A stretch of DNA of 64,000 bases from positions 898,062 to 962,061 of the forward strand of contig CM074805.1 of NCBI GenBank assembly GCA_037447605.1. The letters run 5' to 3'. The notes below the pieces were generated by a model. That model saw nothing but the letters and a program-made list of their open reading frames with translations. It ran no database searches and had not been told where the DNA came from. The position numbers and the translations under genes were made by a program. Each line of letters starts with the position of its first letter. The stretch's first letter is position 1. The DNA comes from Zygnema circumcarinatum SAG 698-1b. Lineage: Eukaryota > Plantae > Zygnematophyceae. This document shows, piece by piece, positions 35,233 through 46,424 of the stretch.

Positions 35233-35563
35233 AGCCAACCAACCGGTCACAAATGTCCAAGGACAAAAACGAACAACCCATTAACAGTACATATGACTGG
35301 TCCTGGCCCACTTGCGCCTCCGCGGCCCTCCCCCGCCCCGCCCCGCCCGGCGAGTCAAGCCGGGTCCCCCCAAGCCCCGCCCCGTCCCGTGCGCGCGCGC
35401 GTGCGGGCGCATAGCTGGCGCTGCCCGCATCCGCTGACTCGGACTTCTGCCGCGTGCCTCGTCCCGCCCGCCCGCCAGACAAATCTCCCGCCCTCCCTTG
35501 GCCCAGCCGCCCACGTGCCCCCCCCCAAGATCCGCCCGTCCGTCCATCCGCCCGTCCGTCCGC

Positions 35564-35666
35564 CCGTCCGTCCGTCCGTCCGTCCGTCCGTCCGTCCGTC
35601 CGTCCGTCCGTCCGTCCGTCCGTCCGTCCGTCCGTCCGTCCGTCCGTCCGTCCGTCCGTCCGTCCG
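35564..35666. repeat. (CCGT)~25 tetranucleotide microsatellite with degenerate extensions to about 35530 and 35820
   Basis: Directly visible. Confidence 0.97.
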
Positions 35667-36558
35667 CCGCCCGCCCGCCCGCGGCGCCTCCCGCGTCCGC
35701 CAAAGATCGCAATCCATCCATCCGTCCGTCCGTCCATTCCCGCGACTCCCGCGGACGGACGGACGGACGGAGTGGTGCGCGCACCCCCCAGGCCCAGCCG
35801 ACCCGCCGTCCGTCCGTCCATGCTGTCCTGCCGTGCCCGCACCACCGCCTTAGGCCGCCACCGCCCGTACGGAGCCTCGATTTCCGTTCGCTCCAGAGCC
35901 AGGGTCGCTACGCCCACGTGGCGCGCGGCCATTCGCACTACCGTACGCGACTCCGTACGTGTCGGTGGCGGATCGCACTCATGCTGCGCGAGTTCTGATT
36001 GGCTCCGCGCATTGCGGGCGTGAACCTTTGATTATCCGCCGGCGATCGGCGGCGCGCTTTACAGGCGAGAGCCCACTGTGGCCGTACGACCAATCCGTAC
36101 GATCGCTCCGCCTGCTGAAGCGCTTTCACGAGGCGGTCAAAAACCGACTGCCTGTCGTTTTGGGCGCATTCAATGCGCGAGGGCGGCGGAACGGACGACG
36201 CGAACCTGACCGCCGGCCTGCTGCCGGCCGGCAGCGGACGGCAACTGCCGGCCGGCCAGGCGCTGACGGGCCCGCCAATGAGAACGGGCAGACTGAGTGC
36301 CAGATGGCCGCCCGCTGCCGCGGGGCCCCCCTCCAACCGCACGGACGTCAACCGCAGGAACCGCGGAGAACGGATTCAGTTGCGGCCGCAGCAAGGTCTG
36401 CAGGATGCAGTGCAGGGGGAAGCGCGGTTGCTGGAGCTGCTGCTAGCAGGCAGGGCCATGGCGGCAAGGGGGGCGGGAACAAGAGAGAGAAGGGAGGAGA
36501 GAGGAAGGTGAGGTCTGTCGTAGAGTGATACAGCAAGAAATGCGCTGCGTCTTTCGTC

Positions 36559-39500
36559 ATGGATACGCCGCAGCAAGAACTCGTTTTGGCAGGAGACGAC
36601 TCGCCAGTTGTGCTGACTGAGCAGTCCGTGAAAGTTGCTGTGAATATCCGTCCACTGATTGCGTCGGAGGTTGCAAGTGCCTGTCAGGAATGTCTCGCAG
36701 CTGTTCCAGGCGAGCCGCAGGTGAGCCAGCAGAACACAGATTTGGAAGGAGCAAGCGTCCTGTCCGGGGAGCATGTTTGTGCTGGTTTACTGAAGGAGGA
36801 ACAGGTTGTAGAAAATGGAGGCTTAGAATGTCTCAAGCCGCAGATTGTAGAAAATGGAGGCTTAGAATGTCTCAAGCCGCAGGTTGTAGAAAATGGAGGC
36901 TTAGAATGTCTCAAGCCGCAGGAACTTCATATCTTGCTTGTAGTTCGTCGATTCCTTTTGCTTTGGTATAATCTCCTCTTGTTAGATGTAATCTTGTAGC
37001 AGATGGTCTGAGTATGCGTTGGCGGAAAGATATCCTGAACGCGGTTTAAGTCTTTAAAATTGACCGTCCTCATCCTTTCACCTGTGGGCTTGGTACCTCT
37101 CCTTCAGTCTGACAATGAAAAGTCAACGTTACATCAGATTGGCCATTTTCCAGCTTATTAGTCGGTCAGTCGTTTTTTGAAAGGCTTGTGAATATGCAGA
37201 ATTTGTACTCCGATAGCTCTTTCAGAGACGTCAGAATCAAAATATTGTGTGTATGTAGGACGATGGCTTTTGATTAGAAGTTAGTTCAATAGTCGCCAGG
37301 GAGTGCTAGGAACAGAAATGCAACTAGCCGTCTGAGCACTCAGTGTAAAAGTACGGTACAGCGCAGAGCTTAGCGTAGCGTAGGTGGTTGGGAAGCCTGT
37401 GATCGATTGAAATGCTTACCAAAAGCAGAACTCTTTGTATTCTTCATACCCCTTTCAACGTCAGTACTTGTGGCGATTTGAGACTGCGAAGTGAAATTTC
37501 ACTCATCTAGTTTATTTTCTTTGCGCCAATTCACTTGTTGTTTTGCATCCTGCTGCCTCTGCACTCCCTTTTTCATAACATTCGATACGTTATTTTAGTT
37601 TCATAGTTTTAATAGAGTACTTGTCGGGTTAGAGTCCTGATATCCTGAATATTTCACAAAAGAATATGGATTTTGTGTGATTATACAGGTGCAAGTAATA
37701 CCTTTGCGGGCGGCTTTCACCTTCGACCATGTCTATGGCGGTGGGGGGATTCCCATGTCCCGCCTGTTTGATGAGTGTGTTCAGCCTCTCGTGGATGGCC
37801 TCTTCCAAGGCTACAATGCGACTGTTCTTGCTTACGGACAGGTAATTAATGAGGGCATATTTCAGGTCTAATGCCAATTTACAACTAAGAAATTTGTGTT
37901 CCCTCCTCGATAGGATGGTGGTTAATTTGTTCCTTAGATTTCAGCAAGTCCCGCAGACGTGAATCCTCATTAGCATATGAGATAGAGCTGAACAAATATC
38001 ACGAAAGAGCTTTCCTAAATTGAAGTCTTTGTTGGATATGGTATTTTTGCAGACGGGATCAGGGAAATCCTACACCATGGGAACTGGATATTCGGTGAAT
38101 GGAGGCTTAGACCAAGGTGTCACTCCACAGGTCATGAATAGCCTCTTCGAACGGGTGGAGAGGCTGAAGCCCAGAGCGCGATTCCATATTCGCGTTTGTC
38201 TCATCGAGGTGTGTATGTACATAATAATGTACTCTCCATTTAGGATCGCATAGGTGGTTTCGTTTGATCAAGTGATAAATTCTTTATGACTTAATACACA
38301 CAATTGTCATTTTCATTTTCTATTCTTAACTCGCTAGATTGCATCATGACTTCCTTAGACATGACTGCTTGCCTCTGGCTCTCTTTCAGCTGTTGAAATT
38401 GTTCTAAGCTTGACTCTGTGACTATGGAGGGACGTGAAGCAGCCTCCACTGTGAGGTTCAGAGGGTCACCTAAGGGACTTAGACTTGACCATGGACGATG
38501 ACAAAAAGTCGCTAAATTTATTGACAATGCAAACTGTCTCGTCGTTTGAGTTTACAGGTGCACAATGATGAAATCAGGGACCTTTTGGATCTCTCTATGG
38601 AGACAATTGGATCAGGAGGAGCGTCACCTGCGTGCTTTCCCAGCACACCTAAGAAGCCGCCCCCAATTCAGCTAAGTGAAAAGCAGCCAATCACCATCAG
38701 AGAACTTGCGGGTGGAGTGGCCCTTGTTGGAGCAACAGAGGTGGAAGTGCATTCGCTTCAAGATATGGTGGAGTGTCTTGAGAACGGCCTCCTCTTCCGT
38801 GCTACTGGCAGTCATCTAATGAACGCACGCTCAAGGTAATTCTCTACAAAGCACACAACTTGAAAAAAATGTACTAAAAAGGCTGTGCTGCAAAGTTTCC
38901 GACGCAGCTTCCATGTCATGCTTGTGACTACTTTAGGCCCTTCTGTGAGTAGTGAAGGCTCGGAGTTTTCGCTGTGTTATCTCATTCTTTACTACTTGGC
39001 CATGAGGAAGGGTTACTCATTTAAGTCAAGTAAACATTTATTAGTTTGGTCACTCGACACTTTTGTATTATGCATAAGTTGTGTCATCCCTATAATCAGC
39101 AGAAAACTATGGATTAGGAGAAATTGGAACAAGGTATGTGATGGACTTCCATCCTGTGGATGAGTCTGACATACAATCTACGTTTGGCTATTTGGTGCAG
39201 CCGAAGTCACGCGATTTTCACAATTACAGTCGAACAGCAAAGGTGGCGCAGTGAACTCGAGGCGGGGGTTGAGGAGCCCGGAGAGTATCTGTCTGCAAAA
39301 ATGCATTTGGTGGATTTGGCAGGCTCCGAGCGCATAAAGCGTACAAAGGCAGAGGGTCTTCGTATGAAGGAAGGTAGGTGGCGGCAAATGTGTCTTTTTT
39401 TTTTAACAATGGCAGGAGCTGGTGTTTTGCAGTGATGCTTAGTTTTGAAGAGTTTTCAATGGTTTATATAGATCTCAGAGGATTCGCGACTATAGTGACC

Positions 39501-42500
39501 AAGGGCCGCTTCCACTTCTGGGCTGATTCTCTGTAACTCTTCTGGCAGGCATTCACATTAATAGGGGACTTCTTGCATTAGGAAACGTGATTAGCTCATT
39601 GGGCGATGAAAAGAAACGACGAGAAGGTGGCCACGTGCCATATAGAGACAGCAAACTCACTCGTCTTCTCCAGGTGAGACATCTGATTAAAGTGGCACTG
39701 CAAAACTTCAGAATCTTGTGATTAGCAATTATGTGGTTTTTGAGGGCAAGAGGCAAAACTTGAACTCTAACGTGGTGGGATGTAATATAGCACAAAATTT
39801 CGCGTGAGTCAGAAGCTTGGAGTGCTTGCATATGATTTTCATCAGGTACGGTGTGGGAGGACAGAGTTAGTTATTTGGCTGAACTGGGGTTCATGCAGCG
39901 ATTGAGATGGTCTGGTTTAAAAACAGTGTTTCTTGATTCCTATAACAAACATGTAGTAGTAATGTGGTTGGTTGTACAGGATTCGCTGGGTGGAAACAGC
40001 AGAACTGTCATGATTGGTACGTGACCACTCTTGCCCCTTCCAGTTAAAACTTGTTGTCCCAAGTTGTACTGGATATTGAAAAAGCACTCCTAACTGTAGT
40101 TCATCTGGGATACTTTCATGTGTTACTACCGAGAAGAGTACGTATGCGCTCCTGTCATGGGAAGTGACTGGTTGAGGACAGGGTTATACTGTAGGTTGCA
40201 TAGCCTCATCGGGTGCCCAACTGATAGTTTGCTTCAGCGGGTCTGAGGTTGCCAGCAATTTCTTTTGTGTTTTTGCTGCAAAGACTAGGGTGGCTGACGA
40301 TAACTGACCAAAGACTCGAATGAAGTCATAGTGAATTGGATATCAACTGTGGGGACGTTGTAAGGCGTTCAACTAGCATTGGAGATAGCAGTCATTGAGC
40401 CACTGGGAGGCTGCTCAATTGTAGCATAAGCAAGTGTGGGATTGCCCGGTTGGCAATGCAGCTTGTGTGAGCCCAGCAGACACCAACCTTGAGGAGACTA
40501 TGAACACCCTCAAGTACGCTAATCGCGCCCGCAACATAGAAAATAAGGCAACGGTAAAGCTCTCTTCCAAGGACTCATGGAGCAGGAGAAATGGCAACGG
40601 AGAGGGTGCAGAATGGAGCATGTTGGTCCCGTTTCTGCTGCATGTTATCCCTGTTGGGCTGCATGTTGAGCATATATGATGACTTTCCTTTCCTATAGCT
40701 GCATTAACATGAACCTGCAGAGGGTCTCTCTTTGAGCAGGTGAACCGATTAGGAGAGCAGCCATCGATTGAACTTCAACGCCTTCGGCAGCAGCTGTTGA
40801 TGCTGCAGGCGGAGGTAGCAGCGGCGAAGGGTAGCGTTCCAAGTGTCAGCAAATCTGGAGATGACATGCAGGTGAGGAGTTCAGCTGCTTGAAAGCAGTG
40901 ACTAAAGAGTTTTTTCAGTTGATAGATGCTGACCAGGTTGATCGCTGTAGTTGACCCACGTGATGCATTGATTACTCTTTTGCTTTGAGGTCTATGTATG
41001 CGATCATTTTCTTCAGATTTGCAAAGTGAAATAATTCCTATATCTTCTGGAAGGAGAGGCAAATTATAATAGCTTGGAGCTTTAGTCTGCCGAGTTCATG
41101 ACACTGTTTATGACTTTTTACGTATGTTACGTTAAGCATCGCAAATACGGGCAACAAGCTTCCTTCCGTCTGCCTTTTTAAAGGATAACCTGCTATTTCA
41201 ACGCATAATGAAATTAGCAGACACAATGGTGGATTGAAGAGACTGACCTGGGACTGGAAATTCTGCTTGCAGACCCTCAAGCAAAAAATGTCTTTTTTGG
41301 AGTCAACGAATGCTAAATTTCGGCAGGCATTAGTTGAGGCTCGCGAGGCACAGGCTACTTCAGCAAAGCAGGTTTCAGAACTTGAAGCTCGAAATGTGAA
41401 GCTTGCAGCGGAGTTGGCTCTCGCATTAGAAACAGCTCGGAGTGAAGCGCAGTCTGAGTTGGAGAGTAATGCCCAAACGATTGCCCAACTTCAAGCACAA
41501 TTGCAGGCCGCAAGAGCGGAAGCAAAGGCAGAGATGGAGAGGATGAAGGCTGCAGATTCTGAATTCCGATCAAAGTTTGTGGCACTGCGTGATAATGCGC
41601 GAGAAGAGGCAGAGGGATTATGGAGAAGTGAGGCACAACTTCGAGCAGAGATTGGAGCAGTTCAGGAACGTGTACACACTGAAGCGAAGCGAGTTTTGGT
41701 TGCAGAAACGGCAGAGAAACAGTTAAGGGCTCAGTTGAACGTGAGCAGAGAGCAGTTGGAGGCAGAGGAGAGGAAGGTTCAAGCAGCGGAAAGTGCCGGA
41801 AGAGCATTGCAGACAGAGTTGCTTGCACTTCAAGGGAAAGTGGAGGCTGAAACCAAAGACTTACAGGAGAAAAATGAGCTTTTGAAGACGGCATTAGCTG
41901 CTGCGCAAGAGGGAGGGAGAGCAGAAAAAGAGAGAGCTGAGAAGGCTTTGGCAGAAAACAAGCATCTTGCAGCTCGTGCTGAAGCAGCTGAGGCAAGAGC
42001 AGAAATGGAGACACAAAGAGCCATGGATGCTCAAGCAGCTGCACTTGCTGCACAATCGACCATTGTACAGCTCACATCTCAAATAATGGGGAGTAGAGAG
42101 AGTGTTGGAGTGGAGGTTGCGGCGACTAATCGACAAATGCAGACAAATTTGGTTGCTGCCCAAGAGCTCGTGCAGGTGGAGGCAACAAAGGCACTTGAAG
42201 CTCAAACTTCTGTTGCCCAACTTAGGGCTGAGGTGGCAGCAGCACAAGAGATGGTTAGGCGAGAAGAAGAGAGGAGAGAAGAGGTGCAGGCGGCCATGGT
42301 GAGGGAGCAGCAGAGGGTGGTTGAATCGCAGGAGAAGGCAGCGGAGGCCATGGCAAGAGCGAGAGAATTGGAAGGTAGCGTTGTTGCACTTCAGGAAACC
42401 ATGCGGAGAGTGGATGGAGAATTAAAGCAGGCAAGAGAGAGGATAGGAGAGGAGGAAACTAGAAGAAGGGAGGCAGATGGACAGGTCATGCAGCTCAAAA

Positions 42501-45500
42501 CAGAACTCGCTGTTGCTCAGGAAATATCGAAAGGAGCTGCTCAGAACTATCAGGAAGCATATGCTAACTTCCTGGCAGAGGGGAAAAAAGTGTTTGATTT
42601 GCAAACAAAGATGGGTGAGCTGAGCTCTGAACTTGCCGCAAATAAGGAGCGCCTTTTCGCCGCTGTGCAAGCAGCCGAAGTAGCGAACGCGAGTCTGGTA
42701 GAGGCACAGTCAGGGACGATTGCAGCGCAGGGAAAATACCAAGTGATGGTTGAGAAATGCGTTCAAGCAGAGGCTGCTGCAACTCATCTTCGCACTGAAT
42801 TGGGCCTTGCTCGAGAAACAGCGAAGCAGGAGGCTATGAAGGCGGCAAAAGCACAGTCTGAGCTTTTGGAGCTGACGAGAGAGCTCGGCGTTGCAGAGGA
42901 GAGGGCGAGGGAGGCGGGATTGAGAGCGTCACAAACTGCAGTAAGCTTCTCCATTTCCTGTTGAATGCTGCACGTGGTAAATAAAGGTCATGAAAATTAA
43001 GTCATGCCATCACCCAAGGCCGCGTCGTAACTCTTGTTACAACGCGGAGAATCTTCCTTTAGGCTTCACTGTGTGCCAGCAGCTGCCTCTTGTACTTCGA
43101 AGATGCACCTTTGTGACTGATGTTATCCACTTTTTAAAGACGTTAGCAGAGGATTCCCATTTGTGGGGTTTTTTCTGAGGTTTTTGGCGTGCATCTAAGT
43201 CTATATCCAAAGGCGTATGTTTCACCATATAGAAATATCTCTACACTTTCCGATGATATCTTCTGGCCGCCCATCTAAGCAAGTAGGTGAAAGAATTGTA
43301 CCTTCATCAGTAACCAACTTCAAGCAAGTGAACAGCCAACTCCAATTTCTGTGTGGCAGGTTGAGAGAGACGCCTTTCGTGAGGCTGCCTTTTCTGGGCA
43401 TTTAACAGACGACCATGTGAGACAGATTATTTCTCATGTTCGGACGAGGGGGGCCTCCTCCATCACCAGCTTCCGCGATGACATCTCCTCCCGCTCATCC
43501 TTTGTTGGCTCCTCATTGGATGAAGATGAGTTTGCGCAATTGGAGGGAAAAAGTGCGCAGAGATGGAGTGCTGCCACCTGCATTCAGACTTGGTGGCGCA
43601 TGTGGAGGATGAGACGAGAATTTGCAAGGCAGAAGGAGGCAGCAATTCTGATTCAGGTGAGAGGAGAGGGAGGAGGAGAGGATTAGATCTCATATGATAC
43701 TTGAGCATGCTTGTGTGAGACGAGGTGTGAAGGAATCAATTACCTGCAGTACAACTATACGGCTCGGGAGATATTGTGGCTTCGTAGTCAGCACGTGATG
43801 CTTGTATGGAAGAACATTGATATGATTTATCTGCCTTCTTCAAACTTTTCTAAAAATGAGCTTTATTTTCCATCGAGGTCAATCGCAGTTTACCGGACCA
43901 CCAATGGACAGTGTCCATTCATTGCCTTAGTTATCGTGTAACTTTTGAATTGAGTGGAGTGCATGGGGTCAGCAATTTGACGTTAATGTATTTGTTAGCA
44001 TCTACGCAATGCATGCTTGATGATTCAGTTTTCAGTCTCCATGTCACTGATTAACATGGCTTTTATGTGGAGTTACTTAAAAAGTCTGAGAATTAGGAGT
44101 GAGTGGTGCAGGGGACACTTTTGCATACGAGAAAAGTTGTCTTATACAGATTTTCGTCTGGTTTGGTTGTTGTTTTTATTAGGGCCCTTTGTCCTGTAAG
44201 TGCAGCCGTGTTTTCTGAAGCGTATTTGACTAACGGCAGCAACTCTGATGTGACGTACTTTCAGGTCCGCTGGCGATCCTATCTGGTGAAGCGAAAAAAA
44301 TTGAAAGGAGTGCGAGGGGCAGTAGGAAAGAGCAATCTCTCCGCCTCTGAAACGTCTGCTAATGCGGAGAGTAAACTGGGGAAGCCAAGCCCTATTGTCA
44401 GTTGGGGTTTTCTTGCATTGGACTCTCCGGGGAAGAGTGGTCAACGATTTGGTTTGTGGAAGGAAGCAGTGGAGGAGAAAACCTTAGCCATGAAAGAGCA
44501 GTTCATGGAGGAGAGTGGTAGCGAACGACCAGCTGCAGAAAGTAATGGATTTGTTGAGGGCCACCTTGAAGGTTCAGAATATGGAGCAGGTTTGGAGGCA
44601 AGGGACGAGTTTGGTAACTTCGATGACGAGGATGATGACATGGACAATGTTCCTGACAGCGGACTCCTCTCTGTGGATTACGATTACGAGGAGGATGAAG
44701 ATGATACGCTCGACAGTGAAGGGCATAAGTCTGACGGAGTGGATGTTAGAGACCATCGGTCTCCCAGCTCGGTCCTTGAATCAAGGTCTTCCTATTCTCA
44801 CGTTTCATTGTCAGATTCTGCCAACTCGTCATCCTTTGCGGACGAGATAGGAGAGCAGTCGGTCTCTCCCAGAGAGTCCTCTCTCCTACAGTCACGCAGT
44901 ACACCTGCAATGGCTCCTGTATCGGAAGATGAGGAGTTGGAGGATAGCAGAGATCGGCCTCCAAAGTTGAAGGGAAGTAGAAGTGTGGGTGGTGTGTTTC
45001 GCCTGCGTGTGAAGCAGAATCGGCCCACCGTAGTTGTACCAACCCAAGAAGGATATTCCGATCCACTTCTTGCTGGACAGAGACGCTTTACAAGCTCGAA
45101 TCGAAATCCTGCAAAGTCTCCGCAGAGGCCATTCTTGTCCTACAAAAAGTCATCATCCAAACAGGCTGCCCCACCTGCCCCATCTCCTGCGGCTGCCCCC
45201 TCAGACCCCCCCCCGGATAACTCAACCTCAACCTCTCCCCATAGGTTTCGGCAGGTGTCTCCTTCAAGAAGACACATGCGAAGTGTGTCATATGAGAAGG
45301 GGAGATTTTGGGGGGAGAGCAGGACTGCCACACTGGGCTTGAGCTTGGGCTCTCCTATTGGACATGAGGCTTCAAGGGTTTGGGGTTCATCTGCTCTCGG
45401 CCTCCATGGCAGCAATCAGCGTGCTCCTGCAACGCCCGCTGCTTCCCCGGTAAGGGGTGATGGGCTACGCTATTTGACAAGTGATGCAGAGTACAAGTCA

Positions 45501-45593
45501 GCAGTGGCACGTGAGAAGCTTGCGTGGGAGCCCTACGTGTTCAATAGGGGCAATTTCTCATCGCTAAGAAGAAGCAAATCTACCCCAGCATGA
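36559..45593 (+). CDS. Kinesin-4 (KIF4/FRA1-type) motor plus long coiled coil, two IQ motifs and an acidic/Ser-rich tail; 12 exons, ~1533 aa
   Basis: Exons 36559-36720, 37689-37841, 38053-38208, 38558-38835, 39201-39373, 39549-39673, 39980-40016, 40462-40553, 40740-40871, 41273-42940, 43360-43656, 44265-45593. [90 protein letters not shown]. Phases are consistent. Confidence 0.92.
36802..36918. repeat. 39-bp tandem repeat x3 in kinesin intron 1
   Basis: CAG(G/A)TTGTAGAAAATGGAGGCTTAGAATGTCTCAAGCCG repeated three times, head to tail. Confidence 0.95.
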
Positions 45594-46424
45594 TCATCGC
45601 TAGTGGCATGATGATGTCATAGCCGCCTCGCCTGTGGCTGTGCTTGGACGAGGAAAGTGATGGGCTGCATTTGGGGTTCGGGTGTGAAGCACAGGTGCGG
45701 AAAAGAAGAGAAGGGGATGGGGAGGTTGAAGGTGCGGAGGAGGAGAACTCACCCTCTGCGCGTACGGACGTGAATGCTGTGGTGGAATGAGTTACTCGGG
45801 AAGGGGACCCTTCTCTAAGGAGGGACTTCCCGGGGACGTGACTTTCACAGCAGATAGTGCTGTTCGTTTTTCCTCGTGGTTCCGCTGTTCGTGTTCCTCT
45901 GGCGGAGAAGCAAAGGAGCATCCGAGGATAATTCTTGCACGCGTTGGCACGCACAATGTGGGCTCACACGAGGCATCGCCTGCTGAAGACCACGGCTCGA
46001 CACCAGCATTTTTGTAGGTGGAGAGAGGGCACCTCTAAACAGCAGCTGAGAGCTGCTGCAATTATACTAGTTCATACAGTCTGCTGTATTTATTGAATTT
46101 TGAATAATCCCCTTGTTATAGTTACTGAGGACAAACTTATGGACTTCGAACTTGTAGATATCATTCAATTTCGTAACCGGTTGATTGGGTCTCTTATTTC
46201 TGAAGAAACGTGTAGATACGTGAAACTGGTCAGACGATTGACAGGTGTAACCAGCGGCATATGGTGGGAGTCAGTTCGGCTCACTTGGAAACGAGTTGAA
46301 GGGTCGGAGCAAGTCATGCATATGGCATCGTAACAATTCCTCTCCTGTGGGTGATCTCTACATTCTGGCTCCAATTCATCGGTCTTAATGCAAAGTTTCT
46401 GTACCATGGTCATGCCCTATTGCG

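Follow-up and report, generated by a model that had tools for sequence, protein, structure and literature searches.

A kinesin-4-type gene with a tandem pair of IQ motifs in the alga Zygnema circumcarinatum

Can a microtubule motor of the kinesin-4 type carry binding sites for calmodulin (CaM) in its own heavy chain? The question is raised by a gene on contig CM074805.1 of the Zygnema circumcarinatum SAG 698-1b assembly (GCA_037447605.1), within a stretch of 64,000 nucleotides (positions 898,062 to 962,061 of the forward strand). This whole stretch is called the window here, and all coordinates count from its first letter. A preliminary description made from the letters of the window had reported a kinesin-4-type motor, a long coiled coil, two myosin-type IQ motifs and an acidic, Ser-rich tail, and had proposed an independent, possibly undescribed route to Ca2+/CaM control of a plus-end motor. 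The locus is one expressed gene for a kinesin-4-family heavy chain of 1533 residues with an IQ pair at the junction of stalk and tail. From its sequence, the chance that each heavy chain would dock two CaM or calmodulin-like (CML) light chains at this pair is about even.

The IQ pair and its transcript

All sequence searches were run exon by exon. The first motif (IQ1), encoded by exon 11, scores 26.9 bits against the Pfam IQ profile PF00612 (gathering cut-off 20.3, E 3.2e-6). The second (IQ2) is split by intron 11 and was assigned by direct reading across the junction; it fits [FILV]Qxxx[RK]xxxx[RK], with basic residues at positions 6 and 11. The Ile of IQ2 follows that of IQ1 by exactly 23 residues, the spacing found in myosin necks. 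The full IQ pattern occurs six times in the six frames of the window (about 128,000 residues), IQ1 being the sole occurrence in the gene. Based on this pattern frequency, we estimate that a second match at myosin-like spacing would arise by chance in roughly 1 of 500 cases. For exon 11 alone, AlphaFold2 predicts a helix over exon residues 71-98, that is, up to the exon end, with a predicted local distance difference test (pLDDT) of 71-77. The IQ region (about residues 1067-1103) is modelled as an uninterrupted, basic and Trp-rich helix between stalk and tail. A protein language model places exon 11 next to IQ clusters, with a weak score (0.82). The two motifs first noticed in the preliminary description are real on these grounds: IQ1 exceeds the Pfam cut-off, IQ2 follows the consensus, and the junction that unites the halves of IQ2 is found in four sequencing runs.

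Transcript evidence was taken from six public sequencing runs of one organism and three studies, and contigs of four of these runs were aligned to positions 40400-45700 (5.3 kb). Sampled words of this stretch are present at 73-79% in the six runs, approximately its exonic share. The predicted joints 40553/40740, 40871/41273, 42940/43360 and 43656/44265 are each contained in contigs of the four runs, which represent all three studies. All four joints skip introns with GT..AG borders, and the contigs are otherwise identical to the window. In run X2, a single contig spans exon 8 to position 45700, and contigs of runs X6 and X3 reach from beyond exon 8 to 45451. The contigs extend 1130, 1180 and 1207 nt 5' of exon 8. 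Exons 1-7 total 1084 nt, and the overhang would fit the whole motor plus a 5' untranslated region of 46-123 nt, so that its length argues for motor and IQ exons on one transcript. The motor exons and the IQ exons belong to the same expressed transcript. The main contig of each run includes exon 11, and no joint skipping this exon was found in the contigs of the four runs, contigs being a form of data that drops rare variants. In these four runs, exon 11 is constitutively included.

A gene-model artefact would put exons 10-12 into a separate downstream gene or derive the spliced contigs from a retrocopy. The sequencing runs are not listed as RNA, their RNA nature being read from the splicing itself, which speaks for an artefact and against a single transcript. 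Single contigs nevertheless cover exon 8 to exon 12 with a 5' overhang corresponding to exon 7, the exon order is collinear with a single Trinity transcript of another alga (P0006, introduced below), and intron contigs of low depth beside exon contigs of high depth resemble pre-mRNA. An artefact is therefore scarcely credible. A separate gene for the 3' exons, which the preliminary description had named as a refutation of its proposal, is in practice excluded by the spliced contigs, in which all junctions between exons 7 and 12 are present.

Coverage of introns 10 and 11 comes from short contigs only (42969-43389 and 43638-44240), at 5-18x as compared with 45-100x on the exons in the same runs. 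These contigs look like unspliced pre-mRNA, or possibly reflect low-level intron retention. At the 3' end, the contigs of runs X1, X3 and X6 stop at 45451 with 27 loose letters that correspond to 45697-45723, and other contigs of similar depth read through. Splicing of this optional intron inside exon 12 exchanges the C-terminal 47 residues, and with them the AWEPY motif, for 31 others (VRKRREGDGE...VVE), with the end at 45790.

Gene model, stalk and tail

The gene has 12 exons on the + strand at 36559-45593, with 1533 codons and a stop codon (4602 nt). Positions 36300-46200 were read and the exon borders were checked by a script; GT..AG borders are found at 11/11 introns, and the phases agree. 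The start of exon 10, the stop codon, the position of IQ1 and the splitting of IQ2 by intron 11 had all been placed exactly in the preliminary description. By exon arithmetic, the predicted protein consists of the motor (residues 1-392), the neck coil (exon 9, 393-436), the stalk (exon 10, 437-992), exon 11 (993-1091) and the tail (exon 12, 1092-1533). The features are listed in Table 1.

Table 1 Features of the kinesin-4-type gene in the window
Feature	Position	Strand	Description
Exon 1	36559..36720	+	ATG at 36559, GT donor at 36721; 54 codons; start and first motor strand
Exon 2	37689..37841	+	Motor, 51 codons; AG/GT borders, phase 0
Exon 3	38053..38208	+	Motor with P-loop GSGKS/T, 52 codons; direct reading and tblastn
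Exon 4	38558..38835	+	Motor, kinesin-4-type loop ending in PITIRE; Pfam Kinesin PF00225
Exon 5	39201..39373	+	Motor with switch I SSRSH and switch II DLAGSE; Pfam Kinesin E 9.2e-12
Exon 6	39549..39673	+	Motor ([14 protein letters not shown]); as much as 90% identical to plant KIN-4 proteins
Exon 7	39980..40016	+	Motor ([12 protein letters not shown]); exon end equals 30 loose transcript-contig letters before 40461
Exon 8	40462..40553	+	Motor end and neck linker; 3' joint in 4 runs
Exon 9	40740..40871	+	Neck coil, 44 codons; 3' joint in 4 runs
Exon 10	41273..42940	+	Ala/Glu-rich coiled-coil stalk, 556 codons; AG acceptor, GT donor
Exon 11	43360..43656	+	99 codons, phase 0/0; IQ1 and first half of IQ2; both joints in 4 runs
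IQ1 core	43582..43623	+	[14 protein letters not shown]; about residues 1067-1080; Pfam and regular expression
IQ2, first half	43651..43656	+	I-Q of AILIQ at the end of exon 11; about residues 1090-1091; direct reading
IQ2, second half	44265..44300	+	[12 protein letters not shown]; start of exon 12, ends in NLS-like KRKK
Exon 12	44265..45593	+	442-residue tail and stop codon
C-terminal motifs	45375..45575	+	RVWGSxALGLHG and AREkxAWEPYxFN, common to P0006; tblastn E 1e-9, blastp E 1e-8
Optional intron in exon 12	45450..45694	+	GT..AG; contig ends in X1, X3 and X6

The stalk encoded by exon 10 contains 21% Ala and 15.6% Glu and no Pro. The enrichment of hydrophobic residues at the heptad positions a and d is 0.372, as compared with 0.242 +/- 0.018 in 100 shuffles (shuffle maximum 0.292), which points to a dimerising coiled coil. 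The Ala/Glu-rich coiled coil of about 556 residues from one exon, as described earlier, is thus borne out by the codon count, the lack of Pro and a heptad pattern above the shuffles. The KIF21A-like domain PF25764 was not matched by exon 10 in Pfam even at E<=1.

The tail encoded by exon 12 contains 0 Cys, 16% Ser, three acidic runs, Ser/Pro-rich stretches and 13 SP/TP dipeptides, in agreement with the acidic, Ser-rich tail without a Cys-rich domain of the first account. Exons 10-12 together encode 2 Cys in 1097 residues, one each in exons 10 and 11. No Pfam family was matched by exon 12. As weak evidence, AlphaFold2 gives exon 12 as a single sequence a mean pLDDT of 44 and two short helices only, and a mostly disordered tail fits this model. 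Five [ST]Px[KR] sites are located at exon-12 residues 54, 285, 324, 332 and 394; their sequence suggests phosphoregulation of the tail of the cyclin-dependent kinase type, linked to the cell cycle. The cluster KRKK (44289-44300), which overlaps the end of IQ2 and resembles a nuclear localisation signal (NLS), is the sole basic cluster in the tail.

Two repeats lie near the 5' end of the gene. A (TCCG)x38 microsatellite (35531-35681) is located about 0.9 kb 5' of the start codon in GC-rich surroundings; its + strand translates into SVRP repeats within a spurious open reading frame. In intron 1, a 39-nt unit is repeated 3.1 times (36802-36922, 97% matches). In every copy, a terminal CCGCAG precedes GT and thereby repeats the context of the exon-1 donor; these sites could be cryptic donors.

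A kinesin-4-type motor and its relatives

The Pfam kinesin motor family PF00225 is matched by exons 4 and 5, and the motor signatures GSGKS, SSRSH and DLAGSE are read in exons 3-5. A whole-library search with exon 4 yielded 54 matches, the long ones being kinesin-4 proteins. When these long matches were scanned, 7/7 proved to be kinesins and 6/7 carried PF25764. In tblastn searches on the window, relatives cover exons 1-8 collinearly, with a per-exon identity to plant KIN-4 proteins of 56-90%; for exon 2, the identity with kinesin-4 proteins is 69-77%. Among solved structures, exon 5 matches KIF7 and KIF4 best, and exon 4 reaches E ~0.07 at best.

The closest full-length relative is P0006, a transcript of 1701 aa from another alga that was assembled with Trinity and is part of EukProt. 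Its motor was used as a proxy in a comparison with solved structures and scores 328.8 bits on KIF4, 281.7 on KIF7 and at most 229 on other families. The named neighbours of P0006 are KIN-4A, KIN-4C, FRA1 and KIF4A. By nearest neighbours, the motor sequence is of the kinesin-4 type, as had been proposed: its exons match plant KIN-4 proteins best, and exon 5 matches best on KIF7 and KIF4. A tree of motors was built from kinesin-4 relatives only, without outgroup families and without the window motor among its tips. In this tree, P0006 forms a group with CLOM_g15145 of Closterium sp. NIES-68 (P0133) that falls outside the clade of land-plant KIN-4 proteins (SH-aLRT 98), both on long branches.

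P0006 shares a collinear motor, neck and stalk as well as the C-terminal motifs with the window gene. Exon 1 aligns with its residues 5-40 at 64% identity, and the exon 10 stalk is 39.6% identical across 528 aa (178 bits), LWRSEAQLR being one of the shared runs (both tblastn). The summed motor bits are 483.0 for P0006 and 483.6 for a liverwort KIN-4. As the motor of P0006 is no closer than that of the liverwort, it is the stalk and the C-terminus that tie P0006 to the window gene. PF25764 is found in 118 of the 120 best relatives of P0006 and is absent only from P0006 itself and from the Closterium protein. No gene record with the product P0006 was found. A resemblance between 'SANAHS' in P0006 and 'SANAES' in exon 12 did not exceed shuffles and was dropped.

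A second isoform of P0006, P0172, differs only by an exact tandem duplication of 32 residues that follows residue 665 of the coiled coil, either a true polymorphism of the repeat or possibly an artefact of assembly. The duplication in the stalk is the sole difference, and no IQ exon distinguishes the two isoforms. The Closterium protein is 48% identical to exon 9, has a motor, neck and stalk collinear with the window gene and likewise lacks PF25764. In this protein of 2676 aa the motor starts only at residue 849, and its annotation probably fuses an upstream gene to a kinesin-4-like gene.

The combination of kinesin and IQ was sought among relatives, in clusters and in surveys. PF00612 is found in 0 of 120 best relatives (precomputed Pfam), the IQ pattern in 171 relatives shows nothing beyond one chance repeat, and the 100 nearest named Atlas clusters of P0006 include no case of kinesin joined to IQ. 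Two scans of metagenomes, one with exon 11 and one with the alignment of the conserved C-terminus, gave no match. Word searches with exons 10 and 12 also gave no match, which carries little weight because full-length relatives are outside the length range of the search. These searches turned up no relative closer than P0006, and the protein of the window gene itself is absent from the protein libraries. Richardson 2006 names no IQ among the kinesins of photosynthetic eukaryotes (PMC1434745). In the available part of the supplementary architecture tables of Wickstead 2010 (1624 kinesins, 45 genomes), no KISc-IQ string occurs, a match that would miss an IQ parted from KISc by another domain name (PMC2867816). 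The literature searched did not contain the phrasing of a kinesin with IQ; only papers on IQD, myosin and CAMTA proteins surfaced. The architecture is not common among the relatives, clusters and surveys examined. It appears undescribed, and sporadic cases elsewhere in eukaryotes are possible.

Several observations weigh against a functional CaM site. IQ2 is matched by consensus only, the Pfam profile score existing for IQ1 alone, and position 7 is not Gly in either motif (M, S). The collinear site of P0006 reads LLQSWFWK, followed after 24 residues by IQRRWKE; it fails the IQ consensus and resembles an IQ pair in decay or in the making. The alignment of the IQ regions of P0006 and the window is weak, as 17/500 shuffles reach its score, and homology of the two regions is suggestive only at the sequence level. 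The Closterium protein has no IQ motif, nor anything comparable. The intact pair is known from this alga alone and may be young, and with a nearest relative that lacks an intact IQ, conservation gives function no support.

These observations also feed a different explanation, in which the IQ-like pair arose by young, lineage-specific drift in a poorly constrained basic helix and has no CaM role. The tail around the pair is unconserved and predicted to be disordered, the nearest relative retains only degenerate IQ-like remnants and Closterium none, and most kinesin domain architectures are species-specific (PMC2867816). We consider drift unlikely, if clearly to be reckoned with: two full-consensus motifs at the exact spacing of 23, in one predicted helix and with one motif above the Pfam threshold, would hardly be expected by chance, and exon 11 is constitutive in four runs. 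If the IQ pair does not bind CaM, the gene is a divergent algal kinesin-4 and nothing more.

Possible roles of the IQ pair and known systems

IQ1 begins about 675 residues past the motor (motor end at about 392, IQ1 start at 1067). This distance makes regulation of the tail or of cargo likelier than direct gating of the motor. If light chains dock at the IQ pair, they would most likely act on the tail by stiffening or exposing it. Ca2+ would then alter autoinhibition by back-folding, the loading of cargo or use of the KRKK patch overlapping IQ2. By analogy, this would follow the logic of KIF1A, unlike a myosin lever or the KCBP plug on the motor. One may speculate that the KRKK patch is an NLS or a microtubule-binding patch masked by a light chain. 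Of the Ca2+/CaM route proposed in the preliminary description, the IQ pair is real and the architecture was not found elsewhere, whereas direct control of the motor is unlikely from the IQ position.

Such direct control would have Ca2+/CaM on the IQ pair switch the microtubule binding or ATPase of the motor, similar to KCBP, or have the pair serve as a myosin-type lever. The IQ motifs are real and CaM-regulated kinesins exist, KCBP being one (PMC1434745). The KCBP regulatory helix and the myosin lever, however, adjoin their motors, whereas IQ1 lies beyond a coiled coil of 556 residues and only a folded-back tail could reach the motor here. Direct switching is in our view improbable.

The sequence VKRKKLKG at the end of IQ2 could also act mainly as an NLS or as a microtubule or membrane patch, as in dual-targeted kinesin-4s, with the IQ likeness secondary or masking. 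It contains the sole basic cluster of the tail, directly on IQ2, and the five [ST]Px[KR] sites hint at control by the cell cycle; for rice, the kinesin-4 BC12 is described as dual-targeting (PMC3440585). IQ1 and the exact spacing of 23 residues are left unexplained by such a patch, and as the main function of the site it is distinctly improbable.

Docking of light chains at the IQ pair would have wider implications. The gene might encode the first kinesin heavy chain with a tandem IQ helix in the style of myosins that bears calmodulin-like light chains, a convergent, direct fusion of a Ca2+-sensing module to a kinesin-4 tail that replaces the KIF21A-like and Cys-rich modules of its land-plant relatives. 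We offer this tentatively, as a possibility somewhat short of an even chance. If true, it would provide a natural model for the recruitment of IQ modules to microtubule motors, in a streptophyte alga whose lineage lies near the origin of land plants, the setting in which motors for the phragmoplast and for cell-wall trafficking diversified. With a phase-0 exon of 99 codons in a motor family with poorly understood tails, it is a testable case of domain gain.

Plant KIN-4A/FRA1 and KIN-4C, as well as animal KIF4, KIF21 and KIF7, share the N-terminal motor, the neck coil and the long coiled-coil stalk with the window protein. In contrast to plant kinesin-4, the window protein has neither PF25764 nor a Cys cluster of the KIN-4C type and ends in the tandem IQ and a long disordered tail instead. 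The earlier statement that a Cys-rich domain is the usual end of plant kinesin-4s applies to the KIN-4C type (P0070 and P0072, 10-12 clustered Cys) but not to the KIN-4A/FRA1 type (P0078, 1 Cys in the last 250 residues).

In the necks of myosin V and XI, IQxxxRxxxxR repeats likewise follow each other at a spacing of 23 residues in one helix. Tandem IQs of myosins at a spacing of 23-25 residues bind CaM or CaM-like light chains, and plant CML13/14 are reported to bind the IQ domains of myosins, IQDs and CAMTAs. No EF-hand protein is encoded in the 64-kb window. The IQs of myosin follow the converter as a lever arm, whereas those of the window protein are remote from the motor; judged by its position in the predicted protein, the IQ pair cannot be a lever of the myosin type.

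The best functional analogy is the kinesin-3 KIF1A, a plus-end motor with a CaM site far from the motor. Its Ca2+/CaM site (residues 691-752) is located in the stalk/tail, and binding there governs back-folding of the tail and allows cargo to be loaded (PMC6077247). Ca2+/CaM control of a plus-end kinesin is therefore not unprecedented. KIF1A belongs to another family, however, and has a single basic/hydrophobic site of no defined consensus; binding is shown for KIF1A and predicted here.

KCBP/ZWICHEL, a kinesin-14, carries its own calmodulin-binding sequence, a non-IQ CaM helix adjoining a C-terminal minus-end motor, together with MyTH4-FERM. It is likewise a kinesin heavy chain, whereas the window protein has an N-terminal kinesin-4 motor with the IQs at the far end of the stalk, and MyTH4/FERM was not matched in any exon scanned. 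In the link of IQD, KLCR and kinesin-1 described for land plants, IQs also bring calmodulin to a kinesin, but on a separate scaffold protein. Plant calcium signals reach microtubule motors via the KCBP helix or, indirectly, via IQD scaffolds. A kinesin-4 with an IQ pair of its own would be a third, direct calcium route to microtubule motors.

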